DNA from: Dimorphilus gyrociliatus
Lineage: Eukaryota > Animalia > Annelida
Direction: 5' to 3'
Assembly: GCA_904063045.1 (NCBI GenBank)
Contig: CAJFCJ010000031.1
Span: forward strand, 62,001 to 126,000
DNA: 64,000 nt
This document shows, piece after piece, positions 1-45,606 of the stretch. The notes under the pieces were generated by a model. It saw only the letters and a list, made by a program, of their open reading frames with translations. It made no database searches and was not told the origin of the DNA. Each line of letters opens with the position of its first letter. Position 1 is the stretch's first letter. The translations under genes were made by a program, and so were the position numbers.

Positions 1-494
1 TCGAAACTGTTTAATTTAATTCTTGAGTAGTAAAATAATAAGTTGTGAAGTAAAGTGGTAAACTGGTAATTATGGAATAATACCAACAAATACATATCAT
101 AAATGGTTTAAATCTGATCTAAGTAATGCGATACTTATGCAAGGTAAACCTATAATAGGATGGGGAAATAAATAGTTGTAATGGTAGAGATCAAAATTAG
201 AATTTTTATTAAGAATATTTATATCTGCAAATTTGCTTATAGATTTTATTATCTTCTGTGATATAAATATTGAAACTTATTACATTTTTTCGCTTATAAT
301 ACATAGGATTTCGTCAATAAAAGGTCCCTTTTAGGGATGACCAAGAAATTTTTCCTAACCAATAATATTTCTGCAACTTTTACAGAATTCAGTCGGATAT
401 TATATATAGTGCAAAGCAGATACATGCGAGAGAAGCGACACCTATGCAACATAAAAGTCGACGAAGGTGTTAGAGCATCTAGTCGCTCTCGTGA

Positions 495-6282: not shown

Positions 6283-6283
<1 letters not shown>

Positions 6284-6314
<31 letters not shown>

Positions 6315-6326
6315 CTTATCTATTAA

Positions 6327-6362
<36 letters not shown>
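6284..6362. repeat. Interrupted (TA)n microsatellite
   Basis: Two long TA runs separated by tttacttatctattaattaa; preceded by TACTGTA (6255) and TACAGTA (6278). Confidence 0.9.
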
Positions 6363-6366
<4 letters not shown>

Positions 6367-7118
6367 ATAATTTATAGCATATTGATAGTAGACCACAGAT
6401 CTTGGGGTACAAGTCCTTTTTATAATTTCTATATAAGATGAGTAAATATTACACAAGCATCATCTTCCAGTCAACCGTTCAGTCAGTCATTTTTTTAGTA
6501 GGCCAACGTAGACATAATTACCGTTTCTGCTGGTTGTATTTTTCCGCTTTTGGAACGTCATAAAAACTTAACTTAATTGCCTAATGGTACGGGAAATAAT
6601 AATAATTATGCCGGTAGAGATAATCTTATATTTAGATTTAAAGGATTATTTTTTTAAATAAAATAATTTGCTGAAAGGCTAGAAAAACACAAACTAATGA
6701 GATGTAAGATAAGATGATAGAGAGAGAGAAATAAGAAGAAGGAAAATGATTTTAGAGGAATGGAATTTTTCTAAAAAATTTTAGTTTTAAGTCGGATATG
6801 CTTTAATGAGACCAAAAGCCTTATTAAGCAGTGCCAGTTGATGGTAATATTATACTTTATTCGGATACAATTTAAAGATTTAAGGAAGACAGAAATATCT
6901 CTCTACGTGATAAGGAATAATCTTTAGCGTAGAAATTTTACCAAAGAATTAATTGATGATATTTGATAGTAGATGGAGTTGGTCGATTCTATTTTAATGC
7001 TACAGAGAGTTGCACTAATAACAGGTAACGGCAGCTTGATCTACTCAATAAACTTAAATGACAGAAAAAAATACAACTTATTCTGCCTAGAAGGTTCTTT
7101 GACAAACTTATCTATATA

Positions 7119-16800: not shown

Positions 16801-19800
16801 AAAAGAAAATAGTTGTTTGACTGATGCCAAGACGTTGAAGGATAAATTTTCCGAATTAAATATTAATTCGGAGGGAAAGAGTCAACTTGAAGAGTCAATT
16901 TGCGAAAAATTGAATGCTTTATGGAACAATTTCTTGAATTTTATTGAATATAATAAAGATTATATCAGCTTCGATCACTTAGGATTAATTTTAGAGCGCT
17001 TATACAAAAAACCATTAATCTGCTATGAATTTCCTTCAAATTTGATTGTTGGTCGACCGAATTTAATAGTTTGCGACGAAAAGAAAACCTGGTCGACAGT
17101 TTTACATCTTTTTTTGAAAGGACCAGAGTCACCTCTGCCTCTAATATCTCAAATTTTGATATGTAATGAACGCACAACTGCTGAAGACGTCGAACTCATA
17201 TACAGAAGGGCAGCATCGTCAACTGATCAACTTTTTGCTATTGTTAATTCTCACAATTTAGGCTTTGAAGCATCGGATAGAGCAGAAAAGATATTTGACG
17301 ATCTTCAGTCTCAAGAAAAAACAAGTAATATATGATTATATTATATAAATATAAATTGTACTTAATTTAAAATATATTTTGCAGGCAAAATGAAGTTAGT
17401 CGTATTATGTCCAGCTGAAAAGCAAGGACAATGCCGACTAGTTACTTCATTAGATCATTACAGAGTAGAATGGAAAAGTTTGAAAATTTTACCAGATGAC
17501 ATACTAAAAGAAAAGGTTTTAGAGCAGTTTTCTACCACTGATTGTGAATCAGCAGCAATTTTAGACTCTAAGAAATCAACAGTTCGATTTATTACCTCCA
17601 ATCAGGCTGGAAATGGTAAATCACTGTGGATAAACTGTCTGAGAGATCGATTGCAAAAATCTCTAGGAAATAGTAAAATGTTTACTTACAGATTTCATGG
17701 AATGGAAGCTAACATAAATGACTTGGTTAATTTTTTTCACACATCCAGTAATAATAGCTGTGAAGAAAAACAACCACTTATTTTTCATCTTGATGTTAGC
17801 AATCTCTCTCAAACGAAGTTGGATGATATTCTCTTCAGTTTAACTATACAAAGGGGACTAATTGATGAAAATGGGCGCGTGTGGAAGAGACAACCAGAGC
17901 ACTATTATTTAATTGAATGTCTCAAATGTGGAATTGAAAAGTTTAATTGTTTGGAGTTTTTGCCAAAAATTCAATGCCAATCACCTATCGAATCACTTCG
18001 TAAATACCAAGAAAACAATATAGATGAAGATGAACAGTTGATGAATGAAGACTGTGATGATTTCCTTGCATGGCGAAAAACATATCAATATCTATATAAT
18101 ATTCATAACAAAAGAAATTTTAACACAAATGTGGAAGATTTATCGCCCAAATCTTGTGTAGAAACTTTACTTCAATTTTCCGGCACATTAAATCCTTCCT
18201 GGGCAGAATTACGAAACTATGCAGTATTCTTAAATAAACAGTTATCACACGCGGAAAAAAATGATTTCTGTGCTACAGATGACTTACCGGACTTTTTTCA
18301 ATTAATAGTAAATTGTATGATAAAAATGGCAAGGGATTTTTCAACTCGTTCTTTACTTATTTCTGAGGAAACTCCTAATGTAACTCCTAATAAGGATTAC
18401 CAGATAGAATTGATGGCTATTAAGCATCGTTGGGAAACTCGTCCCCATCCCTATCTTTTCTTCAATTCCGATAATCATACTTTTACATTTTTCGGCTTTA
18501 ATGTTGAGAAAAAGACCGGAAATTTAGTTGATGTTACGACTGGAGAAGTTATTTTAAATAGAGCAATTAATAGACAGCTACACTGTGCCCTGATAATGAA
18601 TGGTGTAGATTTGTCTGAAACTTTCGATACATTGAGCAAGTAAGACATTTATTAAAATTAAAATTATTTATTTGTATTAAACATATGATTTTTACTTTAA
18701 AGAGAAAATAAACTAAAGAAGATGTTTCCAGTTTTTATTGAATCATCAGAATATAAAAATTATGATGCCAATCAACTTGACGATACATATGAACTGACCA
18801 TGGACAATTGTTTAAAAATACTTGCAATACATATGAAATTGAAATGTAAAATTCCTGTAATTATTATGGGAGAAACGGGCTGTGGTAAAACAAGATTAAT
18901 TGATTATTATTCAAGATTATTGAAACCTCCTGACAAAAAAAATGTAAAGAATAGAATTTTAATGAAAATTCATGGAGGTATTACGATAAAAGATATTGAA
19001 AATAAAGTTATAGAAGCCCAAGCACTGGCGCAAAAAAACTCTAATATTCACAACCTGGATACTCTGTTATTTTTCGATGAAGCCAATACTACAGAAGCTA
19101 TTTACGCTATCAAAGAAATACTCTGCGATGATTCTTTAAATGGAAAAGCTCTTAATTGTAATCAGTATAGATTAAGGATAATTGCTGCTTGCAATCCATA
19201 TAGAAAACATAAAGCAAATATTATCGAGATGCTTGAGAAAGCCGGCTTGGGCTATTATGCGAAGGAAAGCAAAGATAAACTAGGAGGAATTCCGATGAGA
19301 CAGCTTGTCTATCGTGTTCAAGCGTTGCCGCATAGCATGCTTCCGTTTGTATGGGATTTTGGAAACTTGTCGAGTGAGGCGGAGAAAATATACATAAAAC
19401 ATATAGTCAAAAGAACAGTTAACTGTTCGGAAGAACTATCTGAAGTAATAACCGATGTTCTTTCCTGTGCTCAAAATTTCATGAGAAAAGATGAAACCGA
19501 GTGTAGATTTGTCAGCCTTCGAGATGTTGAAAGAACAATGACTGTAATGAAATGGTTTGCTACTATTTCGGAGACACTACTCCCACTTATAAATAATAAG
19601 AAAGCACAGTTGCTTGCTAAAAGAGAAGGCAGAGTTATCGAAGAAAAAAATTTCGAAGATAGTAATTTTCTTGAAAGCAATATTAATGATAATTGTAGCG
19701 ACTCATCGGATAGCTACTGTTCCGAAGTTAATGACAATAGTCTAACGACTTTTAACAACGAGATACGAGCTTTGATTTTATCAATAGGAGTGTGCTATTA

Positions 19801-22800
19801 TTGTTCATTGAATCAGTCAAGAAATTCTTTTTTAAAAGAGATAGGCAATATGCTAGAACGTTATTTACCAGAAGATCAAGATTTACATGAAATATTGTAT
19901 GATGAAATACTTGCTTGTCAAGAGGTGTTTTTAGACGGTTTAGATTTAGGAACAAGCTCAAATCCAATTGCTCGTAACACTGCTCTTCGTGAAAATGTTT
20001 GGATGATAACTATTTGTATAGAATTACGCATTCCCTTATTTATTATTGGAAAACCGGGAAGCTCAAAATCACTTTCCAAAGCAAAGGTAGAAGAATCAAT
20101 GCAAGGAAAAAACTCTACTTCAGAATTTTTTCGTCACCTGAAACATATTCAAATGATGAGTTACCAATGTAGCCGTCTTTCAACTCCTGAGGGAATTGTT
20201 GAGACTTTCAAAAAATGTACTGAATTGCAGGAAGAAAAGAATATGTCAGAATTCGCTGCTGTTATTGTCTTGGATGAAATAGGTCTGGCAGAAGATTCAC
20301 CTCTTATGCCATTGAAAGCTCTTCACGCTCTTCTCGACGATGGCTCGATAGAAGATGAAATTTGTTTGAGTAAACCATCGTTTATTGGAATTTCCAACTG
20401 GGCATTAGACCCTGCTAAAATGAATAGAGGTGTAGTGATGAATTGCTGTGTTCCCGATCAGAATGAGTTAAAGAAGACTCTTAAAGAAATTTGTGGCAAT
20501 AACAGAGTTGTTCTGAATAATATTTCTTCATTTCTAGATGCCTTAACTGAAGGGTATGCAGAAGTTAATAGAGAAGCTGAAAGACTTTTTCGAGAGTTTT
20601 TTGGCCTACGAGACTTTTATCATCTAATTAAAATGGTATACTATTTTTGTAACTATTCCAGTAAACGTCCAACTTACAATGAGTTGGAACATGCAGTGAA
20701 AAGAAACCTAGGAGGTCTTATGGGATTTGATTCTTTCTATTATTTTGCAAATAAAATTGATAAGGAAAATTGTTCAATATCAGAAGGTAACGAAGATGAG
20801 AACTCTGCGGAAGAGATATTGAAGCGATCCCTCAAAGGCGAAGAACTTGGGGCGGAAAGTAGATATATTTTGCTTATTACAGAGAACTATGCAGCTCTTA
20901 ATTTGTTAAAAGATAGATTAGGCTTTGACTACAATATTATTTTCGGATCGTCATTTCGAAAAGATCAAGAGTATTCTCAACTTTGCTTGAATATACATCG
21001 TGTGAAAATTTGCATGGAATTAGGAAAGTCAGTCATTCTTTTGAACTTGGATTCTATCTATGAGAGTTTATACGACGCTCTGAATCAGTATTATTCTTAC
21101 TTTGGAGGACAAAGATTTGTAGATATCGGTTTGGGAAATAATCGAATAAAAGCGCAAGTTCATAAAAATTTTCGATTAATTGTCGTTGCGGAAGTAGAAG
21201 ATGTCAAACGTTTTCCAACTCCCCTCTTAAATCGATTAGAAAAACATTGTCTTACTGTTTATACTTTACTCCATAATGAACAAAAAATAATTGTTGAAAG
21301 TCTTGAAGAGTGGACTTCATTGTTTCTGAAGGCGACAAATTCAATCTCATCGCATGAAAAGTTAGAAAAGAAAGACATTTTTATCGGTTTTGGTAATGAC
21401 ACCATTCCGACACTCGTTTTAAAGTATGATAATAAGAGTAATAAGGAATGCTTAATAAAGATTAAGGAAGAGCTACTTAGAGTGGCCACTCTGGAATCAA
21501 TTATTAAGAATCAAACAATCTTAAAGGAAGAACAGCTATCAACTATTGAAGAGATTTACGTAGAACAAGATCATTTTTTGAGCGTTTTGAAAACTTATGA
21601 AAATGAAAAATTTATTCAAATAACCACACACTCTCGATTGCTCACTGGAGAGGAATTCTCTTCAATCAGACTAGAAAATGCGGAAATGCATATGTTACAC
21701 AATTTCGATACGGAATATGAATTTGATAACGTTCTTCAGAAAATGAGCAAATCGTCAAAAATTTTAATTTTACAAAGTGATACTACTGATGTACAACTCC
21801 TTGCATGCGCCCGCTTCAAAGTGGAAGAAGACAAGATTCAGTTACCTAAAATTATTTTTATAGTAAGAGTTACAAGAACTGGATCAAAATTTAATGGAAT
21901 TCATGGTGGGAAATGGACGTGTGTACATGTTGATGAGCTGAGAAGACCAAGGATATATTGCTCAATACAAGCGCTTAAAGGCAAATCGATACCACTACTA
22001 TTTGAGGCTTCTTTGGTTAAGACCAATAGCGACCTCGATTGTGACAGTATTGTCAATGCTTGTCTGATCGAAGCAGTTAGTCTTTTACGAGATAAAAAGG
22101 CAATTGATTTAAATAGAAGTTCTGATCGTCTAAAAATACTTCGAAAAGCTTTTCAAGACGAAAACGTTTTTTACGTATTCAAAAAAAAAATAATTGAACT
22201 TCTGAAAGACAGGGAAGAGGCTGTTGGGGGAGGTGAAGCATCACGGTGGTTGGAAAAGTATACTACTTCTCTTAAAGCAGTAACTGAAGCAGGGACCTTC
22301 CAGAAATCTTGGCAGATGTTTGTTAAAACGCGAGTGACAATTATTCTTGCATGTATAATCGCGATGGCTGATAAAAACTTCAATTTGAATGGATTGGAAG
22401 ACAATCATGAATTATGGTTAAGAATTTTTGACGACGAGAGAATTGGTCATTTATCGTTTATGACTCTAACAGACGGAATACCAACCCCTGTTGAAGTTGG
22501 CCTTGACCATCTCATTAAAACTAATTTGCCTACGAAATTATCTTTTAGTTGGATTCTATTTGAAAAAGTAGAAAGTTTTGTAGATCAAGTATTAGAACAT
22601 CAGTCTGATAAAGAAGCGATTAAAAATCAATTGTATAGAGAAGAGATTTTCTCACTTTTCAATGACTACGCCGAAGATTGGAGAAAGAGCTATCTATATG
22701 ACGCTCTACTAATGCTACACAATCCTCTTTCGAATGATCATAAAAGTGAACTTGAGGTATTTAATATATTTATTATTTAATCAAAATTTATAATTAATGT

Positions 22801-25800
22801 TGATCAAAACACAGATAATTTACAAGATCCAATGCGATCTAATGGATGAAGAAATAGATGTGTTAGATTATCACTTGCTGTACAACGATAGGAAGAAAAT
22901 ATTTGAGGTAGCTTTCACTCTGGCGAAAGTACAGGATGATCTCCTTATTCAACTTCTTAAAAAGCCAAGCGAATTCTTTTTCGACGAAACCAAAGAAATG
23001 GTGAGCTATTTATTTATATTTTTACTTAATCTACTTTTAGTAATAAACATTTTTTCATGATAGATAATCGATCTGAAAATAGTTGAAAAGGTACTAGCAA
23101 ATTTCGATCATTTAAGAAAAAGTCTTAGCGAACAAGAATCTCGAAAAAAATGGAAAGAATGCATTCAAATGATTCGGTCTCCAATGGAAAAAATCTTAGC
23201 ATCAAGAAAAGGACACAAAATCGCTGACAAATGTTTATCAAATTGGATGAAAGTAAGAATTATGGAATTATATCTTAATCACGTTGTTATGGAAGGAGAT
23301 AAAGAGTTTGCTTTGGAGGAGAAGAAATTACAGGGACTATGGATAGTTTGTATTTTTGTTATATCATAACATAATTAGATAATTTATTAATTTATAAATG
23401 AATTTCAGTATTTAAACAAAGTGAAATCTTGGAAAGACGTCGACTTGCTTGTTCAACTGAAAAGATTTCTACAAACAATGAGAGAATCACTTTACAAAAC
23501 TGTCTTTAAAGAGTGAGACATTTTCATTTACGAACTTCATTCAACTAATTAGCTGCCTTTTCATTCATAGGAAAGTACCTAGATGTAATGTAGAAGCTTG
23601 TCGGGAGATTATATCCGGTCAAGATTTAGTGTGCGGTCATAATCTATGCGAAAAATGCGAATCCGATTGTAAGACAAGTGCTAAACCAGTATGTCGCTTA
23701 TGCAAAGAGCCATTTTCTTTTTCAAATTCAACAAATATTGACTTTGAGACTGCAAGGGAAATTCTAAATACGTTCCACAATCGCTGCAATAACTTTTTCA
23801 TATTCATTATAAACTCCTATTGCTTTACTGGATCGGATGTTCCTGACGAAAAGTTGATTGATTTTATTCTTTCGTGCGTCACCTGCAAATCTCTAAATCA
23901 AACTTGTTATACAACAAATGATTACGTTTTCGACAATGTTATAGATCCAAATCCTGTTTTAAGATCTTTTGCATTGAAGCAGCTGCTGAAATATGCTGAA
24001 GGTACAGTTCTAAAGAAGCTTGACGAATTTTTTAAACAATTGAATAATGAAATAAAAGTTGATGTAACAGAAGATGTCAGTCGTATTGTTATTAATAATA
24101 TGGAAGATTCCTTTTATAATGATTATATACAAACTGACAAAATGAATCGAAAGAGACTTTTGATTGAAAATATCAGGAAATATAAGGAAATTATGCAAAC
24201 AGAACAAGTTGACCAGGATAATCAGACACAGTTGATGGTATCAATAGCTGTTATTCGACTTTGTCTGAAGAAAATCGTCGATATATTCATCGATAATACT
24301 AAGGAAATTGAAGATGAAAGAGTCATTCAAGTCGTCAGAGAGCTGTGTCATGGACCTAATGATTTTCCAAGAAAATTCTTCTTAAAATGTATTTATAATC
24401 AATATGGTATAAAAGAATTAATTCGAATATCCAAACTCGAGGATTTCAATTGGCTAATTCCTTTCGAAACATTTCCCAATAAAACAACTCCAGACGTATT
24501 CTCCTTATACAATAACGAAACTTATAGGGAAATTCGTAATTGTTTTGACTCTAAAACAATAAGCGAAGAGATTTTTATGGATCCTAACGGAAAACCATAC
24601 TTATTTATTCTAGCTCTCTACTCAGCTATGTCTGCAACTGAATTTCATAATTTACGTGATGTTTGTATATTCTTTTCTATATTCACACTAATCGAAAATT
24701 AGAAATTATATTGTAGAGTTAATCAATGATGTTTTTTTCTTCTTTATTTTACAGTACTTGCAGAAATTAAAGGATTTAAAATGCTCAATGGAAAATGAGG
24801 TATTAGCGAAACTCTTTACAACTCGAAAGACGAATTATTGTAATAACATTTTTTAATTGCAGGAATTATGGAATAGATTAATTGAAGAAGATTTTTTAAG
24901 AAATCTTCAATTTCCAAATAAAAATGACCTCTTTCACGATCCTATTGCAACCCTCATTTTTCACGCTGATGTGGTAATAAGATATAGTAAAAAAGCTATT
25001 CTCGAACCTCTTAAGAAAATAGTTAGCGAACCGAGATTAATGAACCAATGGTTTCTACCTACTATGCCAGACAACATACTGGGAAAGATGAAAAATGATC
25101 TTATGGGGCTTAACTACTCAGAAAACATTTCTATAAGTCTTTGTCCAAATGGTCACCCATACCTGATTGGAAACTGTGGAAAACCTGCTTCACAGGGAGA
25201 GTGTAATGTCTGTAAAGCTCAGATTGGGGGTCTATCTCATACTTATGTAAGTGGAAACAGATTGGCTACCAAAGAAGATTTCAAAACTCTACCCGGTCAT
25301 ATTTTGGGCGAAGCCAAATTTGCTAGTAATGAATTCCGTATATCTAAAACGCATACAAAAATTCTTAGAGCCGTTTTGCACATAATGATGCTTGTTGCTG
25401 CTAATGAAGATCCAGATGCTGTTTCGGAATGCCTTCGTAAAATACCTAATTCTATAGATCACTTTCAGTTTCTTATGAACCATTTAAAGAATGACATAAA
25501 AAACATTAAAAAGTCTCTAAAGATAAGCAAAGAAGCAGTCTGCATTTTATTGCATAGCATCTTTAAGTTGTTTATGACATCAAAATGTTCAACTGAAGTA
25601 TGCCTTTGGGAAAACCCTGAAAATCGCGAAAAATGGGAAAAAATATTTGCAACGAACTTCATAACTGAGGCTATTAATGATATAGACAAAGCACAAAGGA
25701 TAATTACAGAAGATGACCGTTTGTCATCAAATCCGCTATTATCCTCTCTAGTACAAACTGATGAAAAAGTTAAAGACATTATTTTACAACGATGTAGTGA

Positions 25801-27406
25801 AGTATGGATAAATAGAGATATTATAGATCTCGAATCTACTCTACAAGAGTTGAGAAAACAAGAAAAAACCAATGAAATAGATTTCATCCTATTAGCCTTA
25901 ACAAAAGTGAATGAGCTGGAAGCGATAAAATATCTTCCTGACATTATTCAACTTATCTACAGTATCGTTACAAACCTTCGAGGCAAATTTCTTAGATCAG
26001 ATTTGAAAACGATAACAATAACATCCTACTTGTCGTACACAGATGGTTAGTTATTTTATATTTCAAAATATTTCATATATTCACCACCTTTATAAATTAT
26101 TATTAAAACAATTGTTGTTTACAAACAGAAGACCAAGCTCTTGACATGTTTAAGTCATTTACAAATGCATGGAAAATCTGCAGAAACAGCCTATGCAAAA
26201 TTGGTAAACATATTTTTTATGTAAATTTAAAATTATTTAAATCAATTAATTTATTTAAAGAAATCAATGGAAAACACCTACCAGAAGAAATCTTATCAAT
26301 GGCTATAGATGAAAAGACTCCATTGGAATATCTCCTACCATCCACAAAAGGGAATGGGCTAGCTTCGTTTGCTCTTATTAATTACTTGGTTAATCTACAA
26401 AATAATCTGGTGACAAAAAATTCTGAACTTTCCAATTCTAAGTTGGAATATATGCAGATAGACGAAACATTGTCAATCGTTGATGTTATTAATATAGATC
26501 CGGAGAGAAATGTTGAAACATTAATTCTGTCAACTTACTCATATGAAATAGATTTACAGAGCAAACAGAGTTCAGTCAAGTACGACTTCTACTCTTTGAG
26601 ACGCCAAATATCTTCTTCATGGTTAGAAAATCTTCCCGTGTTGCAATTTGAACGGCCTCCAGAGATAGTTTGTAGAGACGATCTTAGAATGAAAAGTAAA
26701 CTGAAGGAGGTTGGAATTGATCAAATACCTTTATCGAAAGCGGTGGGAGATCAGATATCTGCGGAATGTATTCATATTGAGGAGGTGTGCGAAAGTTTAT
26801 CGATCCTAAATATTGCGGTTGGATATTTGGCAACAATTTCAAATGTTAATCCAAAGACAAAATTGATTGCATTTCTCGAAGACTTGCGCATAAGAAATGA
26901 GTCGTTATTAAAATCAGCTGAGAAGAATTGTAATATTGAACATGTTGAAGACTTTTGGCATATATTGTCAAGAGAACGGGATAAATTATTAATTGATCAT
27001 CAATTATTTATTACTCCTGATTCTTCTTTAATAGATGAAGAGCAACAAAAAGCTATTAGAAATTGTATTGGAAGCAATTTAAAAGTAGCTGAAGATATTG
27101 TCATTTACTTACATAGGACTATACATGAACACTACGATCACGATCGTATGTTACTGCCGTAAGTTTATAAACCCTTTACTTCTTTACATTTTCCATATAC
27201 AGTATATATATATATATTTGAATATATGAAATGACTATTGTGTTTATTACAGATTACGGGATGTTTATATTGAATATCTACAGGAAAAGGAATTACCTGT
27301 TGCCGAACAAATACTAACATGGCCAAAAGATATTCTATTAAAAAATGGAATTGAAGTTTGGAAAATAGTATATGAAATTGTAAGAAGTGAAAGCAGAAAC
27401 GATTAA
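10896..27406 (+). CDS. RNF213: Full-length RNF213/mysterin-like AAA+ ATPase / E3 ubiquitin ligase (~30 short introns, roughly 4,700 aa)
   Basis: Exon 1 MDGLDADG...PKE splices to DKVPEE (11215). N-arm motif TNVIFHCIVD (~11978). Degenerate P-loop SNQAGNGKS. Active AAA modules GETGCGKT/LLFFDEAN and GKPGSSKS/VIVLDEIG. C3HC4 RING at 23584-23703. RZ finger CPNGHPYLIGNCGKP...CNVCKAQIGGLSH at 25142-25240. Last exon LRDVYIEYLQEKE...WPKDILLKNGIEVWKIVYEIVRSESRND* ends at 27406 and resembles the RNF213 C-terminus. The splice junctions I checked keep frame. Confidence 0.93.
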
Positions 27407-28346: not shown

Positions 28347-29249
28347 ATGTCGAAGAGATTTGATGAAATTCCCATGACTAGCATTTGTAACGTTTGCTCC
28401 AGCTTCAAGGAACGTTCAAGCATTTGCGTGTATTGTGAAAATGGTTTGTTAAATTTTATATTCTTATGGTCGTCTTATATTAATTAAATATTGTTTTAGC
28501 TTTGGAAGTTCGAAGAGAGAATGAAAAGAATAATTCACTAATGGCGGGTAAGTAAAATATACATTGTTTTTTTGTTTTTACAATTTGGTATATTCGTTTT
28601 ATTCTTAGCTTTTAGAAAGCCGAACTTTGTGGCAGATGGAACATCTTCGTCGCCATCTTCCTCTGAGGGGTTGTCTGAATCATTCGCTGAATCTCCATCG
28701 TCTGCGGGTGCCGCTTCTGCTTATGACTCTGCTTCTGCATATGGCTCTCCTTCTGTTTATGAATCTGCTTCTGCTTATGAATCCGCTTCTGCCTATGAAT
28801 CTGCTTCCAGCTCTGGCGCAAGCTCTTTAGCTGGTTCAAGTTCGGGCGCTGATTCTTCCTCGCCAGAACAATCAACTCTCCCTACTTCGAGTGACGAGTC
28901 TTCTGCGGAAAGTGCGGCTTCCACCAAAAAAAAGGTAACGAAGACGCCTTTAAATTACGGAAATTTCTTAGTAAATTGTCCAAAGGAGGCCCACGTTCTG
29001 TACAATGTCAGAATCTTATCGAATGGCCTCAAGGTGGTATTCTCAAAAGTACGCAAAACCCAGGAGCAAATTGACGCTGAAGAAGCTGAGGCTGAAGCAC
29101 AAAGACAAGCGGAGCAGCAACAAGCCGAATTTGAACAGATAGCTAATCGTAACACAGGAGAAGATGAATCTTCTTCCGAATCTGAAGCTGGAAACGAGCT
29201 AACTTTTAACTTTAGAGACGTGACCAGCTTCTATCATCCTTTAGGCTGA
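28347..29249 (+). CDS. Uncharacterised 261-aa protein (3 exons): N-terminal CxxC-x9-CxxC, Ser/Ala-rich ASAYES repeats, acidic/Gln helical segment
   Basis: Exons 28347-28443, 28500-28547 and 28609-29249 join in frame through two phase-1 GT-AG introns. CNVCSSFKERSSICVYC at the N-terminus; five 18-nt units at 28713-28802. No family recognised. Confidence 0.72.
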
Positions 29250-30519: not shown

Positions 30520-31370
30520 GTATATTGTATTGGCTTCAATAACTCTAAAACTCCTCTCTGCCCTTAGACTCTGTCTATCATACTGCAAAACATTAGATAT
30601 CACAATGTATCTAATGTATTCAATCTTCTGTACATTTTGTTACAGTTTATGAACATACTGATATAATAAAGTAATTTATTTGTTAGAAGATGGGAATGGA
30701 AAGAGTAGTATTACATAATTATCCTAATATTAAGGCTCGGAAAGAAGAAATCAAATGTTTATTTCGATTAACATGCTCATGTGATTAGAAAATCTCCCCA
30801 CATTGGTGTTTAGTCAAAAGAGACAGTTTGTAAAAATTATCTAACGTTAAAAGTAAGAATTGAAGGAGCTTTGCAAAGGCGAACAACTTATCTTCAAAAT
30901 TCTATCAGATTGGCGAGATTTACAAAAGTTTGCAAGTTTAAACAGCTGGACATTTAGCAATAATTACAGATATATATATATATATGTATATTAATACATA
31001 ATATATAGGTCTTAAAATAGAGCTGATTACATTTCTTAAAGTGTTCGACATATTGAAAAAAGTTGTTTTCAAAAAATTAACTGAGAAGAATCGTAATGTT
31101 GAGCATGTTGAAAGCTTTTTGGTATAGGGAAGAGTTATCAAAAGAATATGAAAAATTCCCCACATGATTATCAATTATTTGCCATTCTAGATTTTACATT
31201 CATAAAACAAGGAAAAGTTGGAAAGATAACATAGGCCAATATAGCTAATGATATCATCATTCACCTGCTAAGATCTACACTATCTTAAAATTCTTATAAA
31301 AATTAAACAATTGCATTACACCATCGTAAGTTTATAACTCCTTTTTTTTTCCTTTAAGGTTTATTGAACA
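30520..31370 (+). pseudogene. RNF213: Decayed duplicate of the RNF213-like 3' end
   Basis: Colinear matches to gene 1 at ~4.16 kb offset: ttagaaaatct (30785 vs 26623); ctgagaagaatcgtaatgttgagcatgttgaa (31081 vs 26918, 29/32 identical); cgtaagtttataa including the last intron donor (31325 vs 27158). No long + strand ORF remains. Edges approximate. Confidence 0.8.
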
Positions 31371-33688
31371 TAACTGACCTGGATTTATATACTTATTTTA
31401 TACTAGTCTACGAGAAATTTGAAGTGAGACCCTAGGGAAGTTGACGTATGATCATGAAATCATTGTGGCATTCGCAAAATGAACATTCCTAAAGAATAAA
31501 GTTATTGTACCGTATTTGAGGCTCTAAAGAATTACATGAAGAGCGCTACTGTTGATATTAGAATCAAGTATTCGATGAATGATCTCTCTAAATAAGTCAT
31601 TTGATATGGTTTGTCAAGCCTTACATGGGAAATTTTTTATTTCTATTAATGTATTATTAATAAATAAAATTAATTTCTTATTTGAAGAAAGTGACGAGCA
31701 TGACTTGTATATAATGGCCAACTTACTTCCCCTTTCTGTATATGCTTTATTCAAATACTGTTTTATGGTATGTAATTTTGGAATATAGTTTTGATATTCA
31801 AGTAAATTTATATATTTGATTCAATAATCTTTAATAATCTTCGATATTTAAGTTCAAAAGTTTCATTGCTTCAGACAACTTTCATTTTTTATTCTCTCTT
31901 TTTTAGACGAAAGTGAAATAAAAAAAGGAGATACTTTTCAATTAAACCTTTCACCGCCACGCAATATGAATATAGACAAGTTGCTTCAACAGAGTACATT
32001 TAAAATATACATGTTTAGAAATGCTCATTTCTATAAAACCAAAAAATTTAAAAATGGCCGACAATCTTATATAAATTTTTGTTCTTTTTTTCGAATATTC
32101 TAAAATTTTTCATCGAATAAAAGAATGAAATAAACTACAGATGACTTTAAAACATTTAGTTGCAAACAGTTAAAGTGAAAAACATTATATAGTTTAGTTT
32201 TATAGGAAAGATATTTAAATGACAGAAAACTAATAACTATCTTTTCTCATACATAGATCTTTTCATCTTATTAACATCGTAAAACAGTTCGAGAGAAAAT
32301 CCTCTTAAATTTCGTAATGTTTTAGAAAATCGCAAAACAAAGTTATTACCTTTCGACATGACTATGCAATATTTCTAAGGTAAAAGTGAATTAATTGTTT
32401 TAATATATAAGCGTCTATTTACAACAAATTATATGCATCTAATATCGTTTATTTGCGTTAATAATTCTAACAAGAAGAAGAAGAAGAAGAGAAGAATATT
32501 AAAGCATATATATCTTTTCTGGTTATTAGAGATTATGATTTAGATACTTTATGACTAATTAGAGTTAACATTTAAACATTTCTTGTATAATTCTAGATAA
32601 ATTGCTATTTATTAATGCTTAGTTTGAAATAAATAAAGCAATATTCTACATATATTTTAGAAATAATTATGAAAATAGGCCTGCGAAGGTGAAAAGTGTT
32701 GCTTTCGTTAATTAATTTACTTTCACCATAAGCAATTATATTTAATACGGAGTTTAAGGAAATTTATGATTACAAAGAATAAGAAATAAGATTAAATTAA
32801 TGATTTTATTAATTAATTTAAAAGAATATTAATAAATATGTATTTTGTGTAATTCGTTTGTTTTTTAGTATTTTTTGTTTGCTTCTTGATTATTATTACT
32901 TTTATAAGTAGAATATATGATATTTTATTTAAAAAATATTGTATTTTAGGAGAAAATACAGCAATATTATTGAAAATTTTCCATAATTTTTTATTCACAG
33001 TTCGTAATTCTCAATAAATTCGACAGTTTTCGCTATCTGTGGAACGTTCTTATTGGCTAATTGGTCGATTTTAAGTACTCAACAAGTGTATAAAAGTCTG
33101 AACTAACATATTTGAATTCATTATATGCTTCCTCAACTTCAACTATCTTCCGAATTTTTGCTAGAAGCTGTGTCGTAAGTTTTTGAACCTTTTTTTCTTA
33201 TTTCGCTCTCAATTCTCAACGAATATTTCAAATAATTTGTTTTAATTCAATTTCAAATATTTTATTTGAAATATTCGATAAGTTTTAAATATTATATGAG
33301 AATTATTAACTTTCCCCTCTTCCTATTCGCTTTCGAAGAGAGAGGTAGAAAACACAATTTACTCTCGAAATTTTTCCTTATAGATATTTAGCATTTAGCA
33401 ATTACTATTTCTAAATATTTAAGAATGTATATCTTTGAAAAGGAGATTTAACTTGAATACAATTAGAGAAAAATGACTTGAATATTTTTTATTAACGTCT
33501 GAAATATTAATTCATAGTGAAAAATCTGTTCTTTTTTTTTTAATTAATACTCAAGTACCTACTCATTAAAAAAAAAGAAAGCTCACTCTCTCTTTTTGTT
33601 TTTTTCGGGCACTGGTCAGTCTTAAATGTTATTTGTTTGAGATCACTTTATGATATACTCTTGTATTGTCTACAGTATTTCAACAATA

Positions 33689-36600
33689 ATGGAAAACGCT
33701 AGCATAACAATGAACTCTTACAACAGTGGCTCACTAAGACTTGCCAGATCTGCGAGGAGAAGAAACAATTGTAAGCTATTCTCATAATTGTTTTTTTTTT
33801 ATTCTAATTTTTTTTTCAATTCAATTTTTAGTTGTGATGGCCGAAAAATATAGTACAAATATAGTACTCTATTGCGTAGTGCATAAAGACTTTTTGTGTG
33901 AAAAAGATAGAAAATACGTAAAAGTTCATTACGTCTACCCTGGTAGTTATGATAATAATTTGGCTCCCGTAAGAGAGGTTTGGTAAGTGAAAAATTGTGG
34001 AAAAGTTTTGTCTTTTGTGTTTTTAAAAAAAAAGTGTTTTACCGACAGCTTTTTGAATGATAACTGGATGATGGGTAAAGCTGAACTAACAATTCCAATT
34101 CGTCTAAGAGATACCTTCCAATACGTTTACCTATTCAAGGATGGTGATGAACCACTTCACTTTGAACATCTAGAACATACTCTAAGAGTTGAAAATAGTA
34201 TGAGGCAATTACTACGGGACGACCTATATTTATTAATGGAAGAAGATTGTAAGTTTTTCCGTTCAATTGATATTTTTTCGATATACAGTAAATTGATATA
34301 AATTTAAATATACATGTTTGATTGGCAGCCATGTTAATTTTCGACGGATTCGTTCGAAAACAAATGAAGCAAACTTTCCTTACAAAGGCCAGCAATTTTT
34401 GGAGTGAACTAATTGACGAAGAACAGCAAATAACTAGAAAATGTAAGTAACCAAAATATAAAACATTTACGTAAAGTAATCGGTTTTTAAATGACAATTT
34501 ACCAACAAGGCATTGAAATTCTACTGCCCAACTACGAATTCTTTACTACTGACATGCGCTACGTGCAAGCTGGAAGTCCATCACATTTCCTCTCGATTAT
34601 TATGGGTATTATGAAAATGCAAGGAACAAGTATAAAGCCAAACATTAGTCAGAATGTATGTTTCATTTTTCGAAAGAGTTTTTTTATTTTTTTATTTTGT
34701 CAGTTAAAAAATAATATTTATATATATGATTCCCTGTAGATTATTGGCAAATTCATATCAAAATGCAGAGAGAATATGATGTCGATAAACCGACATAGTA
34801 TAGGAGAAAAGATTTTAGAAACTGCCCAATGCGCGCTTATTTGCTTAATTTTGGCGCAAGAATTTAGAATAACGACCAATATTCTACCGATGAGAGTGTT
34901 CAAATATTTCCCCCCGTTGGATAGCGAAACCCTCTACGTTTGGACTGGTTCTCTCAAAACAAGCTTTAACAAATTCGATAATCTTGTTGAAAGGTAGTTG
35001 AAAAATAGTTTTTGCGAATTAAGTATTATAAAATACTGTATTTTCGATGAAATTTTTTCAATATAGCTGCTTGAAGACGACGCTCGTTAAATTTATTTCA
35101 AGAGAAGTTGGCAATGGAGAATGGATTTTTCTGCTACGACTCTTCCTTCATTTGAAAGGGGAGGCAGATCGTCTGACAACAAGCCACGAGACGGAACTAA
35201 GTAACCGTATAGATGATCATACGCGCCTTAGTATCATAGAGGGACTGAACGCTATGCCACAAAAATTTAATCGAATTAGCGAAAAAAGGTAGAGTTTTAA
35301 TTCACTAGCTTTAATGGTTCATTCGTCACTACTCACAATGTAGGTTTATGACAATACTCGATAATCTTATACGCCAATGTGATAGAGCCGATGTAATATG
35401 GCTACATTTCTTGTCCTCATTGACCTTGAAACATCTTTATCTGGTTTTGGAAAGGGAGTATTGTCAACCAGAGGCGATTTTTAAAGCTTTTTCCTGCATT
35501 TTGAGAAGAGAGCTATCCACCTATTCGGTACAAAACCAAATAATTAAAATTTTCGAATATAAGTAAACTGAACATTATTCCTCTTTCTAGGATGAACAAT
35601 TAACTCTTACACTAGACGTCACTATCAGATGCCAACAACTAGTTGAAGACTATCCTACATGGATATCTTTGTAAGAGAATTAATTAACTAATTATATATA
35701 CATATTTTTATACTTGAAATGAATTTACAGACTGACCATGACCGAGTTGACAAGAACGTATAAACACATAGATGAGATATTTACTAGTTTTCTAAACAAA
35801 ACTATGTCCAATGACATTCAAAATGTTGCATTATACCGTGAAATCGGCATAAGACTAGTTTCAATTAACGAAGTATTTTTGTCCCAAATTCTACAATATT
35901 TCCCCTATTTTCCATATGAAAATTACATGAAAACATATTCAACAAATCTACGGATTTTGTTAAATCTGTTTTTTTTTGGCTTTACTAATATTCATAAAGA
36001 TTTTCACATTTTGTCTTGTATACTAAAAACAACTGAAGAAAGCAATATTGGAAAAACCGTAAAACGATTAACCACAGAGTGCATAGAATATCACATCAGA
36101 AAAACATTGAGAATAGTAAGTTGACGAATATTTTTTAATTACTGTATATAGTAACATAAAAAATTTGTTTTTAATCAGGAGTATGGTGGGTTCTACGACA
36201 ATTTACTTACTGAATATCAGCTATTCCCTTTTGTCAAATACCATCGATGCATTAAAAATGCTTTTAGAAAAGAAGTAATTGATGCAACTTATGACCTAAT
36301 GGAATTTGTAAGATATATAATTTATTCCTTACTTTTGTGTTTAACTGTTCGTTTATTTAGAGCCCACAGACTGCAAGTACTTTACTGGAAAGCAATAGTG
36401 ATTTCTTGAATTTATTAGTCGAAACTTTAGAATGTAAAAGACCAAAAAAAGAGAGGGACCTTAAAATATTCTTGCTGGATTTAAAATTCTTACCTTACCT
36501 CCTTAATTATTATATGAAAGGTTTACTATTTGTTTTTACTACAATCTTTTCAATTACTAACTGTTGTCTCTTTTAACTTTTAATATTAGCGAAACAAAGA

Positions 36601-39600
36601 GAAGATCGGAGAGTTATAAAGGCGTTGAACGAGTTTATGGACTTGGTAGTGGAAACAGTAGCATCAATCGATGACGGTCATATTCTAGTGAAAGATATGC
36701 TAAGCATTAATTATGAAAGCATAGATTTTATATCGATAATAACTGAAATGAAACATTTCCACTATAAGAGATATCCGAACAAATTTTTAGAAATTGTTCG
36801 AATCAGACATAACGAAGCTGAATGCTGCAAGAAGTTTTTCAAAGTGTCTGAAATTCTTCTGAAACTATCCAGTTTTGTACGAAAACGTAATATTATTAAA
36901 TTATACGCTTTCGAAAAATAAATTTTCAATTATTTCAGAGTGCAATTGGAATGACAGAATTTTCACATATGATGACATAAAGATTGCCCATTTTTGCAGC
37001 GCCTCATACTCGTGGGATTTTTCTGAGATAATCTTATTTATTGAGAAAACATTTACAAGAGAATTTATAGAGACCGTTCTTTTGGGTGGTTATTGCATGA
37101 AAAGTGCAATATTTCGCTATATGCTCGTTGCAAATGAATTAAAAAATAAAAAGCTATACAACCAAAATGGAGTTACAAATGTATACTACTGTATGGCAAA
37201 ATTTGCTGTGTACGTAGTGGAAACTACCGTAAATCAGTATCAGAAATTTTCCGAAGAACTTTTCAAGGGCAGCTCAATAGACTACAAGCTATTGGAAAGT
37301 ACAAGTTTGAAAATTGACGATATTGAGAACGAGAAAACTATCGTTCGGCGCCTTCTTCAACTGGAAGGAAATGACTGCGATTCTCTCAGTGTCAGATTTG
37401 ATCAATTAAAAGGTTATCTGTTCGAGAATGAACTAGAGAACGTGGCGGTTTTGCTTGAACTTCTGGTGAACGTTTACGGCTTGAAGATTGACTTTGACAA
37501 ATCGATTTTTTTGCGTCTTGTCGTAAGTTTATAATTTCAATCATTGGGAATTTAAATAGAATATGTGTTTTCTTTCATTTATAGAAAGTTAACGTTTCGC
37601 TACCTCCTCAAAATGTACACTCTGATATTCGCCGTTTGATAAATGCGATTCTTGATCACTCTAGCGACCTATCAGTGCTAGAAATACTCGTTCAGGAGAG
37701 TGACATTATTGTTGGATTAACAGAACTAATACAAAAATACGAACAGATGGAAGAGTTTTGCAACAGACATATTTCGGGCTGTCGCGAAACGTTCAATACT
37801 AACTTGGCACTATTGATAAAGGTAATTTCACCGATTATCTTCCAATTGAAGGATGCTGATAACGTTATGGACATTATTACCCTGTGGAGACGATGTACGA
37901 AGCTTAAAGCGACACATAATACTGTTGACCTATCCGTTCCTTTTGATATTGTACGAAGGCAATTTGGATCTTATTTAGGCCTGTCGGACGTAGACGAAGA
38001 AGACATGAGCGCTAAAGTTGAAACATTAAGAGGAATAATTTGCTTTGGAAATGTTACCTTCAGTTATAGTTCCACCAAGATTAGAAGTCTTATTGTTGAT
38101 GAGGAAAGCTCGTTAGTCGAATCGGTCGTTATCGAAGAGTTGTTTAAATGGTCGAAAACGCATAAAGAATTGTTTCTGGCCATAAATTCAAGAGACGGAC
38201 TTGCAATTACTCTGTTTGTTAAATTCGTCCAGTCCGTCAAGGATCTAAAGGAAGCAATGGAAGAACTATCGAACGCGGGATTCAGTCCCTTTAAAAAATA
38301 TGATATTTCCATTATGAACCGAAAAGGCAATCGTCATGTAACGATTGAAGGCATAGCGGAGAAGAGTCTGACTGGCGCTCTAACTTTTCCAAGGCACGAG
38401 AAAATTAAAAAAATAACTCGAGCCGTTCAATGCTTTATCGAAGAATGGAAATTGAAGTTGGCGACAAAACGAGAAAGATATCCTTGCTTGAAGTATTTTC
38501 CATCGGAAAAAATCTTTACACTCGGCAAAGAAATGATAGAATTTGATCTATCCGGTACGATAACGGACGAAATGGCGCGACTAGCGGGAATATTTGCTGA
38601 CGATAAAATTGACTGTAAAGATCTTTATGATGGAATTGCCTATTCTCTGAGAATGCAAGAGGTTGACGTACACTATAACATTGACACATCGGCTCTTGCT
38701 ATTGATGATGACAAAAGGTATTGTATTGTATTTATTTTTTTATTTGTCGTAAAACTTTACCTATTTCATGTAATTATTGATCAGTATTATTGAGAATTTG
38801 TGGAACGTATGGAAAACTCATATGATGTTTATTGACGATGGCCCGTTGGGTGTAGGATTCGGTTCTATCGGACATTTCGCTGGCTATCTCTACCAATCCA
38901 ACATGAAGCGAAATACCGCTTATATCTCAATGATAACCAAAGGTCTTCCATGTCTATTTCAAGAGTCGGAAGAAACGATGCTACGAAAAATGACAATCCT
39001 CCTTATGAAGGAGAACACCGACTGGAGTATAAAGCCAAATCAAATACAACTCTGCAGTGAACAAACGACTGTTGAAGACCTTCAAATATTTCTCGAGCAG
39101 GCAGCGTTCTTCACTAATGAATTATTTTGCGTAGGGGATGTAAAATTACTGAACGAGAGCTGCGTTGAAATATTCTTTGATATTTTTCGATTTTTACTCG
39201 GAGTTGGAAAGATAGGTGAGAAAAAATGTTTATATTTTTTGTTTAGCTAATATAGTTAACTAAATGTGTGTTCCTTTATCCTTCTACCAAGGTACTATCA
39301 AACTGGCGATTTTTTGCTCGGATTCAAGTTCAACTTGTCGATTTTGTGGATCAGATATCTTCCTTAAGGCTTCTAGCGAATTCGCTCTTGACATGTCATT
39401 GCATGTTTCACGGCAACTAATTGTAAATTCAGTAATCACGAAGAGAGTGGAAATAGAAAATGAAGTGTTTATCGAGAGGAGAATGTCCCAGGTAGTTTTA
39501 AGCGGTGCAATATCAACAAGACAACACTTGAAAAACAGGACTAGACAACATTTACATCCCGACTTTAAGGATAGCAACTATTTTATTATTCGTCCTAATG

Positions 39601-39908
39601 ATGACACTTCACTTGTTGAATTAATCGAAGAACTAGACGAAATATCAGAGTACAGGAAAGAGGAGATTTTTATAGCATATCATTTTGATTTGAAGAGCAT
39701 GTCGATTCCCTTGGCCGACAGCCTTTTGTTTCGATTGACGGTCGTTGGCGCACTCGTCAAAAATGATAGATTATGGAAATGTGAAAATCGCTTTTATTTC
39801 AATTTTGAGATAAGCGAACACCAAATACAAAAATACAAGTTTGCCAAAATTCTCCCAATTATGGATTTAGGAACCGTTGAAGTTTTGGAATATGACGACA
39901 ATTTATAA
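33689..39908 (+). CDS. Truncated RNF213-like paralog (17 exons, ~1,700 aa): N-arm/stalk and first degenerate AAA region only
   Basis: All 16 GT-AG junctions traced by eye keep frame from ATG 33689 to TAA 39908. Homologous to gene 1: TNIVLYCVVH vs TNVIFHCIVD; EEWKLKLATKRERYPCLKYF vs DEWSEYVRKNRDKYSGLNYF; NQIQLCSEQTTVEDLQ vs SQILICNERTTAEDVE; AYHFDLK...LLFRLTVVGALVKNDRLWK vs IFHLDVS...ILFSLTIQRGLIDENGRVWK. AATAAA at 40115. Confidence 0.85.
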
Positions 39909-42243
39909 GTCTTTTTTTCTGGTCTAACGAAAGTCAATAGACGGATACTATCAGTATTATTTTATACAAAAATATCAATGATTACGTTAAATACCATATA
40001 TTTAAATGTATTTATACAACAAATTTTTTTAACTTTTTTACACAATTTTTCTGCAGTTTAATGTTGAATTTACACCAAATTTTTTTCAATTTTTTCATTT
40101 ACATAACAGTATTTAATAAATTACTTTCAGTTAATTAAAATATAACGTCTGCTTCGTTTACGTTGCAAGAACAGTTGTTGTTCGGTTTCCAGACACTCGA
40201 ATGCATTTCACTGGCAATTCGATAAGTCTTTTTTTGGATTATGTTCAATTTAAATGTGCCGTACTTTGTACGTTCGTATAGAAACAGCGCTTATAAGATA
40301 TTTTTATGTTTTAGATGAGAACATTATCATGAAATTTTGTACATATCATTGGGTAGATAAAAACCCACGACAACTATTTCTTCGATATAACAATTTGTAA
40401 CTAAATAGAAATTAAGTTCTTTTTAAAGGGAGCTTTCTGCTATTTTGAACAAGATAAATGATAGAAGAGAAATTGAGAGGATTAGGAAATCAATTAATCG
40501 CTAGTAAAGTAGTGTTTATTAGTAGAAATAAGTTGTTTTTCGTACTATTTAATTTATTATTCTCTTGATCCGTATCAATTTATATTCGAGTCATTTGAAA
40601 TGAAACCTTATCTATATAATTATCTATATAATTGAAGAAAAACAATTAAAACTTTCTTATTAAAGTTGTATAGATGCAATAGGTTGTTTATCAACAATAA
40701 CAGTGAACCAAAATCTAATAAACAAATGCAAATAATATCCAACTAAATTAGAGAAAAGATGAAAAGAGTAGACGACTTAAGAAGATAAATTTTTTGACAA
40801 ACATCATACAAGTTGTGACATATACTGTATTTAATAGATTAAACAAATTAATAAAGAAAATGACTATAAAAGATCCTATATAGTTTGTCTATGAAAGTAA
40901 TGAATTATAAATCATAGTCACTTATTAAATGGATAAAATATATTAGGAATAGATACGGAAAAAGTATATACTGTATATGTATATACAGTATATATATAGT
41001 ATATAGAAAGTAGAAGAGACAAGAGCTTAACTTCAAAACTAATCATTTTTCTCCTATTATTCCATTGTTTTGTTCGTTAATTAATCCATAACTAGATTGT
41101 TCTCTACGAAAAAGATCTGTGTCATATACATTGTCTATAAATAGTCTTATAATGCAGATATACTGGATACATAGAAAGATACATGACTATTCATAATTTG
41201 TATAAACATTTATGTATATAGTATATATTTATAACACTGTATTTATAAAAGAAAAAACATGAGGTCCTAATACAAATATTCTGCTAAATTATCCTAACCA
41301 TATGCTATAATTAACATTAACGATTAAGCAGCTAAATCTATCATTTATAATCAAATGGCTAGCCTATATGATTTGTTTCACTACATTATTGTTATTGATC
41401 TCTAAGCAATGAACTAACATTTCAAAAGAAATGACTATCCCTTAAAATAGGCTGAAAAAGGTGCTTTTCTAATGTAGAATTGATATTCTAAAATTGGACA
41501 GGGAATCAGATTTTATTCCACTTTTTTATTTGTTTGTAATCGTATTTTCTTAATGAAATTCCAATTAAAGTATAGATATATGGTTTATATATGACATATA
41601 TACAATAATTGTATAGTAATTATTTTCTAGACAGTTCAATTTAATGGTATCTCCATGATTTTTTTATCATCTAAAAATACACTTCTATACAAATCTGTAA
41701 AATAGAAACAACAATGTCTGGGAAATGATGATTACGAAAGTAAACTTATAGTATATTAATATATGTAATATATTCTAATACAATTTGATAGAATAGATTA
41801 AGTATCATTTGGCAAACACATCTGAGATAAACCTTTATTCTAATTCGAAATAACATAGAAACAATGAAAATTTAGAATCTTGTTTTTCTTTGTTTTCCTC
41901 TCTATTGATCTATGTTCACAATAAGAGGAAAGAAACAAGGAAAAAAAGATATAAAGAGAGAAATGACAAAGACCTCTTAGAAGAGAATAACAATTGATAT
42001 TATCGTAAATTAAATACATTTTTTTACTTCTCTTATTTTTTTTTAATAAAAACAAAACTAAGCAAACAAGAAACGACATGATAAAATATATAATATATCA
42101 CGGTACGATTGAAAACAAAGTTAATAAGGCTATACAACAGAAGAGAGAGAGAGAGAGAGAGAGTAATATTTCATCAATATTTTTCCTATACTAGGAAAAA
42201 TCATTAAAAAGAAAGAAAAAATATCCCCACCTGCCGTCCTTTC

Positions 42244-44063: not shown

Positions 44064-45606
44064 TTATTTGCTATAATTCATACGTTTGTAGGTTGTACGT
44101 AGAATGCAGGCAGCAACTAGTCCAAATATCTATAGCAAAATAGAATTATCATTCTCACATTAAAAGTTACCATTAGTATTATTAAAAAGCTGAAATGGAT
44201 TTTACTAACTTGAATAGCTGCTATGCAAAAGCCTATAATCATCAATTTTATTGAATGATCGTGGTACCATTTCTTTAAAGCTTCTTCGCACCCTTGTTTG
44301 TTCAAATATTTAGAAGGGTTTCCCGTCTCCGCTTCATTTAGGCATTCTTTATACTCATCCGCAACCCTATCTTCGCCGTAATTCGAACAACAAGAATAAG
44401 GGACCATCTGAGTTCCAGGCCCACCGAACCACGTACTATTTTTGTAATCTTTATAATTGTAGACTCCGCAACATTTCAGCTGATTGCAAAAAGAGAAAAA
44501 AAAACATAATAAAATCATAAAACATCATCAAAGCATTTTACTTGGTCTTGCAAAAAATCGTAAGCGGTAGTTGTGTCGTTGACGCGTCCATACTCTTTCT
44601 GAACTTCTCGTATCATGTCATCGTGCAAATGATCGTTGATTTTTTTCTTGTATACAATTGCGAGGACAGCAACCGCTGCCTCGGCCAGCATGATAACGAT
44701 CAAACAAGCGGCGTACTACAGACAAAAAAGAATCTTTTGTAAGAAAAAACTTCGCAAGTAAAGTTAACTTTTAACGAAACAACCAATCTTCAATACAAAC
44801 ATACAAATTAAAAGCTTACCAAGAATAAAAGAGGTTGACTCTTCTTAATAGCGCCGCAACAACCGATAAGAGATACAAGGAGAACAACTCCTCCAATTAT
44901 GATAAGAATAAGGCTTATTTGACCCAACAAAGGAGCAGCTTGGCCAACGTTAACAGCATCCAGGTACTTGGATAAAGTATTATCCAATTTCATCCATACT
45001 CCCATTCCAAGTAGTCCAATACCGGAGAGCTAGAAAACATTGTTTTTTATTAACTAATTTCTTTAAAAAAGACACGAATATTTCTTATCACGAATCCAGT
45101 GCAGAAATTATTTGCTGTCAAGAAATTCTGCTGAAAAGGCAAAATTCTCGCCAAATAGGTTAATGTAGAATATTACGGGCCTTCGAATCGTCTATATACC
45201 TAGGTGTATTGTTATAAATTCAAAATTCACTATGCGTAACCAGTATAAAAAAACCGTCGCTAGGTTAGTCAAAACGGATTTATTCTACTTCTTGTATTTT
45301 CTTTTTCTTTATTTAAATATGAGAATACGTTATGTTCAATACAATCAAACGATCTTTTAGCTGTATTTTCCCTCTACATATTCATAAATACGTATAATCA
45401 CGCAAAGTTTTCTATTCTATTAGTAATGTTCTTTAAATTGGTGCCTAGGTATATTCTTATTATCGTTCAAAAATTAGGTCAAAATGAAAAATGTTCCAAT
45501 AAAAGAATAAAGAACAAAACAACCCCTTTAGTATTAATAAAATACTTACAACAAAAATTGTATTGAAGATAATCAAAAAAACTCTGGGCAAATTTCCTCC
45601 GCACAT
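44064..45606 (-). CDS. Tetraspanin (5 exons)
   Basis: MCGGNLPRVFLIIFNTIFV/LSGIGLLGMGVW (TM1), LIGCCGAIKKS (TM2 end), YAACLIVIMLAEAAVAV (TM3), large loop with LKCCG, VPYSCC and QGC, then TM4 and tail IFGLVAACILRTTYKRMNYSK* ending at 44064. Confidence 0.92.

Follow-up and report, generated by a model that had tools for sequence, protein, structure and literature searches.

What becomes of a copy of RNF213 that has kept its front part and lost its motor and its ligase? This question is raised by a stretch of 64,000 nucleotides from the annelid Dimorphilus gyrociliatus (assembly GCA_904063045.1, contig CAJFCJ010000031.1, positions 62,001 to 126,000 of the forward strand), which is called the window here and in whose coordinates all positions are given. 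A full-length RNF213 gene (gene 1, 10896–27403, plus strand) is followed about 6 kb downstream, on the same strand, by a shorter gene (gene 2, 33689–39908, plus strand). The product of RNF213 is a very large E3 ligase of the immune system. It is quite probable that gene 2 is a selected and expressed RNF213 duplicate that keeps the front part only. Its most likely way of working, although a tentative one, would be as a non-enzymatic binding or scaffold protein using the stalk surface.

Gene 2 was modelled by reading the sequence together with a scripted phase check. The model has 17 exons on the plus strand and 5,169 nucleotides, which are 1,722 codons plus the TAA at 39906–39908. Exon 1 (33689–33770) begins with the ATG at 33689, the start used by the public gene model; an alternative in-frame ATG at 33650 is possible, and an in-frame TGA lies at 33638. 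Exon 2 (33832–33982) was placed by sequence reading, the phase check and the public model. The end of exon 3 (34049–34248) is what the RNA contig described below shows at its loose end at 34329. The other exons were all supported by this contig: exon 4 (34329–34442, joint 34442/34510), exon 5 (34510–34655), exon 6 (34740–34993), exon 7 (35067–35288), exon 8 (35344–35527), exon 9 (35591–35670), exon 10 (35731–36115), exon 11 (36179–36307), exon 12 (36361–36520), exon 13 (36590–36886, donor GT at 36887), exon 14 (36939–37522), exon 15 (37585–38717), exon 16 (38785–39215) and exon 17 (39292–39908). All of the 16 introns run from GT to AG and are 52 to 84 nucleotides long. There is no internal stop in the coding frame, against 147 and 148 in the other two frames and about 126 expected from base composition (log10 P of about –57 for zero stops on that expectation). 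The window DNA is AT-rich and of animal type with short introns, and the GC content of gene 2 is 36.4% in exons and 22.3% in introns, compared with 26% in the flanking DNA. The GC fractions at the three codon positions are 0.43, 0.30 and 0.36; the first two equal those of the large exons of gene 1 and the third is higher. The claim of a first-pass annotation of this DNA, that 17 exons stay in frame over about 1,700 codons, was thus borne out.

The expression of gene 2 was examined with a public run of 2017 (X1, 60 million letters), which contains 71% of the words sampled from this DNA and was compared with positions 34300–40299. Over gene 2, X1 gave one spliced contig of 5,629 nucleotides without a single mismatch (100% identical). 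In this contig exons 4 to 17 are joined, and 13 of the 16 introns have been cut out at GT..AG joints. All joints are as modelled except the end of exon 13, for which a donor at 36872 (exon end 36871) had been considered and was replaced by the one at 36887. X1 is taken as RNA-derived because introns are removed in its contig. The contig has 744 nucleotides ahead of exon 4, about 311 more than exons 1 to 3 can supply; therefore, gene 2 has a 5′ untranslated region (UTR) or additional 5′ exons upstream, for which 33378–33688 is the candidate region. At the other end the contig runs past the TAA for a further 148 nucleotides without a break, which gives a 3′ UTR at 39909–40056. A likely poly(A) signal, AATAAA, is predicted at 40115–40120, and ATTAAA occurs at 40134. 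Both transcription and termination near 40.1 kb, as they had been anticipated, agree with these data. An exhaustive search of 1.84 billion representative proteins with exon 15 returned a 100% match to a public protein, P0001 (DgyrCDS14183, CAD5126003.1), which is unnamed and 1,596 amino acids long. P0001 and the 1,722-residue model have the same start and the same stop. The public model is shorter by 126 amino acids, 45 of exon 8 and 81 of exon 10, and through internal donors it includes only the first 16 and the first 47 residues of these exons; the missing parts are present in the RNA contig. Gene 2 is a genuine protein-coding gene of Dimorphilus gyrociliatus and is transcribed.

The relationship of gene 2 to RNF213 was investigated exon by exon, and P0001 was used where the whole protein was required. 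Two RNF213 loci from other samples, L001 (SRR23372229) and L002 (SRR23372228), served for comparison together with gene 1. Direct searches were blank: phmmer with P0001 gave no match in the PDB, which includes vertebrate RNF213, or in Pfam, no usable match was found among ESM Atlas features, and a comparison of gene 2 with gene 1 by tblastx yielded a single match. However, BLASTP of exons 15, 16 and 17 against two exons of gene 1 gave E-values of 3e-9, 5e-7 and 2e-7 in collinear order. The phmmer search of P0001 against the open reading frames (ORFs) of gene 1, L001 and L002 produced collinear matches over residues 79–1591, and the collinear alignments with these three copies have about 21–29% identity. 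The overall identity of gene 2 to RNF213 copies is 21–24%, with about 23% to the parent. With hhalign, profiles of the three RNF213 copies were aligned with gene 2 over 370 columns (97% probability, E 3e-11) and, in a second segment, over 107 columns (94% probability, E 1e-7). Exons 1 to 14 align with the N-arm exons of gene 1 from about 12073 onward, and the intron between exons 16 and 17 is at the same place as the gene 1 intron 17336–17389. In the representative search, the only true non-self match of exon 15 was P0003, an RNF213 linker exon. P0003 is 46% identical to the linker exon of gene 1; in its syntenic locus, an ABC transporter precedes it on the minus strand and an RZ finger follows. 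A bacterial PKD protein matched by exon 15 in the same search was judged spurious. An AlphaFold model of residues 871–1596 was poor, with a predicted local distance difference test (pLDDT) score of 48 from an input alignment that contained RNF213 rows. RNF213 chains made up the eight best Foldseek matches of this model, at E 3e-12 to 4e-10, with dyneins next, and are taken as support only. Judged by its sequence, gene 2 is securely homologous to RNF213 despite the blank direct searches, and its origin is an RNF213 duplication.

The architecture of mouse RNF213 has been mapped as an N-arm (residues 1–1290), a linker (1291–1774) and six AAA units (1775–3405), followed by a hinge, an E3 module and a C-terminal domain (CTD); AAA1 is without Walker motifs, AAA2 holds a structural ATP, and AAA3 and AAA4 are active (PMC7311170). 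On this map, gene 2 comprises the N-arm, the linker, AAA1 and the large subdomain of AAA2. Exon 15, the linker region, is homologous to the 596-residue exon of gene 1. It aligns, together with most of exon 16, with the linker and AAA1, so that exon 16 includes the end of the linker and the AAA1 equivalent. Exon 17, the equivalent of the AAA2 large subdomain, aligns with residues 1–205 of a 417-residue exon of gene 1. This gene 1 exon is assigned to AAA2 because the only GxGKS motif before AAA3 sits there, an assignment which rests on position and on the published map (PMC7311170). The Walker A motif of AAA2 reads AGNGKSLW identically in gene 1, L001 and L002, whereas AISTRQHL is aligned to it in gene 2 (site 39498–39530; LSGAISTRQHL against TS..AGNGKSLW in the RNF213 copies). 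The strands after Walker A are retained, as seen in IFIAYHFDL versus LIFHLDV, LFRLTV versus LFSLTI, and LWK versus VWK. The protein stops 12 residues past the LP of LPIMD (aligned to LPKIQ in gene 1), and the ORF stops ahead of the equivalent of the gene 1 AAA3 exon (18722–22780). The erasure of the P-loop and the end of the ORF after the LP(K/I) segment, before the first active AAA module, had both been noticed in the first-pass annotation and were confirmed. So was the lack of a RING and an RZ finger: no Pfam family was matched in P0001 at E-values up to 1, thus no AAA, RING or RZ finger (PF20173), whereas the RZ finger of gene 1 (24857–26050) is found at E 5e-17.

Altogether the AAA2 small domain, AAA3 to AAA6, the hinge, the E3 shell, the RING, the RZ finger and the CTD are absent from gene 2, and so are the first 200–300 residues of gene 1, which are acidic and probably disordered. 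Since there is no nucleotide site, motor, RING, RZ finger or CTD, gene 2 would be unable to perform the ATP or ubiquitin-transfer steps of RNF213. These losses show that ATP binding or hydrolysis of the RNF213 kind, and likewise ubiquitin transfer, are beyond the predicted product. At the front of the protein, a beta-sandwich of CBM20 type has been located at residues 378–515 of human RNF213 (PMC11549300). A conserved motif block is common to gene 2, gene 1, L001 and the RNF213-like gene upstream of the window. For the module itself in gene 2, no Pfam CBM_20 match was obtained at E 10 and no PDB match with a four-sequence profile. The AlphaFold model of residues 1–200 failed, with a pLDDT of 34.

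The position of the truncation suggests how the duplicate was shortened. In both L001 (10700–10800) and L002 (9520–9530) an intron lies 1–4 codons past the position of the gene 2 stop, with the borders ACTG|GTGAGT and GAAG|GTGAAA. Because the stop is only 1–4 codons before an intron of these two relatives, gene 2 ends at an old exon border. Its sequence at the stop is TTA TAA GTC. Gene 1 has no intron at this position, where it was lost or never present. The duplicate was probably cut in, or reads into, an ancestral intron.

The next question is whether selection keeps gene 2. Its terminal branch is the longest in the tree, with 2.8 changes per site versus 0.4 for gene 1, in a tree of five sequences with long branches and no supported forks. 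Of the 171 positions at which the three RNF213 copies do not vary, gene 2 retains 62 (36%), a larger share than its overall identity would give. No orthologue was found when 1.8 and 5.8 billion proteins were searched, and word searches with the whole P0001 (range 878–2,793 amino acids) and with exon 15 (range 207–660 amino acids) returned nothing. Under neutrality more than 100 stops would be expected at such near-saturating divergence, and since the frame is open, selection appears to keep a protein. The maintenance of the frame by selection is inferred from these stop statistics rather than from the ratio of non-synonymous to synonymous substitution (dN/dS). The neighbourhood offers a local comparison. 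A decayed RNF213 relic (31024–31344, plus strand) lies between genes 1 and 2 and corresponds to the end of the gene 1 exon 26146–27162 with its donor site. It is 75% identical in nucleotides to gene 1 positions 26864–26956, with indels and no frame, and matches 18 of 20 positions at the exon end and donor (27158–27177) with collinear spacing. This is probably the relic mentioned in the first-pass annotation, which had described gene 2 as highly diverged but not decayed in contrast to it, and the description holds.

Two rival explanations deny that gene 2 is a functional gene of its own. It might be a pseudogene that is transcribed, namely a truncated duplicate that is heading for decay and has a frame still open by chance. 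It is truncated, has no catalytic parts and no known orthologue and evolves fast, and a truly decayed RNF213 fragment is found 2.3 kb upstream. However, its 1,722 codons have remained free of stops at about 23% identity to the parent, GT..AG is intact at all 16 introns, of which at least 13 are removed correctly, and the codon-position composition is that of coding sequence. The relic itself shows what local neutral decay looks like, with indels already at 75% nucleotide identity. A pseudogene is therefore very improbable. Alternatively, gene 2 might be an artefact of assembly or annotation, namely the 5′ part of a full-length RNF213 of which the rest is elsewhere or alternatively spliced. RNF213 genes are long, annotators frequently break them up, and the contig end at 40056 is no proof of a poly(A) site. 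On the other hand, the RNA contig is unbroken from exon 17 through the TAA into the 3′ UTR, the public annotation has the same stop, and the window has no N anywhere. No RNF213-like ORF was detected downstream on either strand in 39950–64000; the nearest gene there encodes a tetraspanin and is on the minus strand (44117–45005). Neither an assembly break nor splicing on to distant AAA or E3 exons, on which the first-pass annotation had made its reading depend, was seen, and we consider such an artefact to be extremely unlikely.

What might a protein of this kind do? Recruitment to pathogens fails when RNF213 is deprived of its first 586 residues, and in primates the N-terminus and stalk of RNF213 are under positive selection (PMC11549300). 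As the N-terminus is needed for recruitment, a stalk-only protein could occupy the same targets or partners. The gene 2 product may thus be a modulator, competitor or helper of the full-length enzyme that gene 1 encodes beside it. We put forward this role tentatively, as one that is possible but not the expected outcome. It is also possible, though somewhat doubtful, that gene 2 encodes a functional protein outside the RNF213 pathway, in which the stalk and linker are reused as a helical scaffold and adjacency reflects tandem origin only. The extreme divergence (21–24% identity and the longest branch), the failure of phmmer to match vertebrate RNF213 and of Pfam to give any match, and the loss of the AAA2 ATP site, which glues AAA2 to AAA3 in RNF213, are in line with such a departure. 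Nothing speaks directly against it, since the 36% of invariant positions and the fold signal show a kept architecture only. A role unrelated to RNF213 is about as likely as one linked to gene 1.

Several points weigh against a selected duplicate of the RNF213 front part acting as a binding or scaffold protein. X1 is not recorded as RNA, and its RNA nature is inferred from the spliced contig, which cannot prove the true 3′ end or poly(A) site. The evidence for expression is at the RNA level. Both AlphaFold models are poor (pLDDT 48 and 34). The orthologue searches, which came back empty, gave neither a dN/dS value nor an indication of age. The long branch could mean relaxed constraint on most residues, and great age or fast adaptive change would be compatible with it as well. 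Even so, the selected and expressed duplicate of the front part remains the preferred explanation. The first-pass annotation had proposed an intact sensor, decoy or dominant-negative partner without effector parts; the intact, expressed and effector-less paralogue with a true stop and a 3′ UTR stands, but the sensor, decoy or dominant-negative role is without support in these data, as is the CBM20-like module. A stalk-only expressed protein is a small and tractable version of the presumed recognition module of RNF213. Gene 2 is also a natural experiment on the question whether the stalk can act, or interfere, when motor and ligase are missing.

Gene 2 can be compared with several known systems. 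Its N-arm, linker, AAA1 and AAA2 large subdomain are homologous to and collinear with those of full-length RNF213 (mouse 6TAX and 7OIK, human 8S24, and gene 1). It shares one intron position with gene 1, is arranged in tandem with it on the same strand, and its model returns RNF213 first in Foldseek. In contrast, gene 2 is about one third as long as full-length RNF213, and the Walker A motif of AAA2 and everything after the AAA2 large subdomain are missing. It is also without the N-terminal extension of about 200–300 residues of gene 1, and its divergence is too great for vertebrate RNF213 to be matched by phmmer. Among immune receptors, truncated or decoy paralogues are known from paired sensor and helper NLRs and from integrated decoys. 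By analogy, gene 2 may be regarded as a catalytically dead, fast evolving copy beside an intact immune gene. However, RNF213 is an E3 and AAA machine and not a STAND NTPase. Literature searches for truncated paralogues of RNF213 gave no account of such genes, only a family expansion in bivalves. The architecture of gene 2 is new for RNF213, yet it is an ordinary evolutionary product, a truncated tandem paralogue.

Gene 2 is not the only gene of this type in the cluster. An RNF213-like gene on the minus strand occupies positions 1–9025 of the adjoining sequence L005 and ends 482 nucleotides before window position 1; its public product has 3,207 amino acids and no Pfam hit. A 1,379-residue ORF without similarity to RNF213 comes first and is followed by ORFs collinear with the N-arm and linker of gene 1. 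The 3′ end of this gene lies beyond L005; going by arithmetic, its stop would be expected close to the region in which gene 2 ends. Both genes are RNF213-derived, with N-arm and linker homology and no enzyme domain detectable by Pfam, and they differ in strand and in the extra first ORF of the upstream gene. Over the columns that they share their identity is only 14.5%, and both resemble gene 1 more than they resemble each other. The earlier impression that nothing like gene 2 exists is weakened by this second N-half gene adjoining upstream in the same cluster. Its presence beside the same RNF213 suggests repeated retention of such truncations, in one species. It is conceivable, although unlikely, that in this very compact genome the RNF213 locus has been modularised, with two enzyme-less and separately diverged N-half genes flanking the full-length ligase and acting in trans as exchangeable subunits for target recognition or regulation, or as decoys for factors by which the stalk is attacked. 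If true, this would be a split arrangement of recognition and effector, which has not been described for RNF213.

Gene 1 itself is a clear RNF213. Its public product has 4,828 amino acids from 10896, and its 3′ limit is the last homologous ORF seen. The 1,352-residue exon matches RNF213 structures at E 1e-261, and two exons upstream of it map to mouse residues of about 1364–1709 and 1887–2329. An ORF at 28572–29249 (plus strand) was considered as the last exon of gene 1 and dropped, as it looks like a separate Ser/Ala-rich ORF. It has 225 amino acids, begins with a hydrophobic segment, matches nothing in Pfam and resembles a small secreted low-complexity protein. Synteny with the window is seen in the locus L001, where an ABC transporter again lies upstream and on the minus strand; the contigs L001 to L004 stop at or just past RNF213. 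In the window, the neighbours are a single-exon Ras-family GTPase (495–1106, plus strand) and the ABC transporter (7239–7988, minus strand), whose public product has 688 amino acids.

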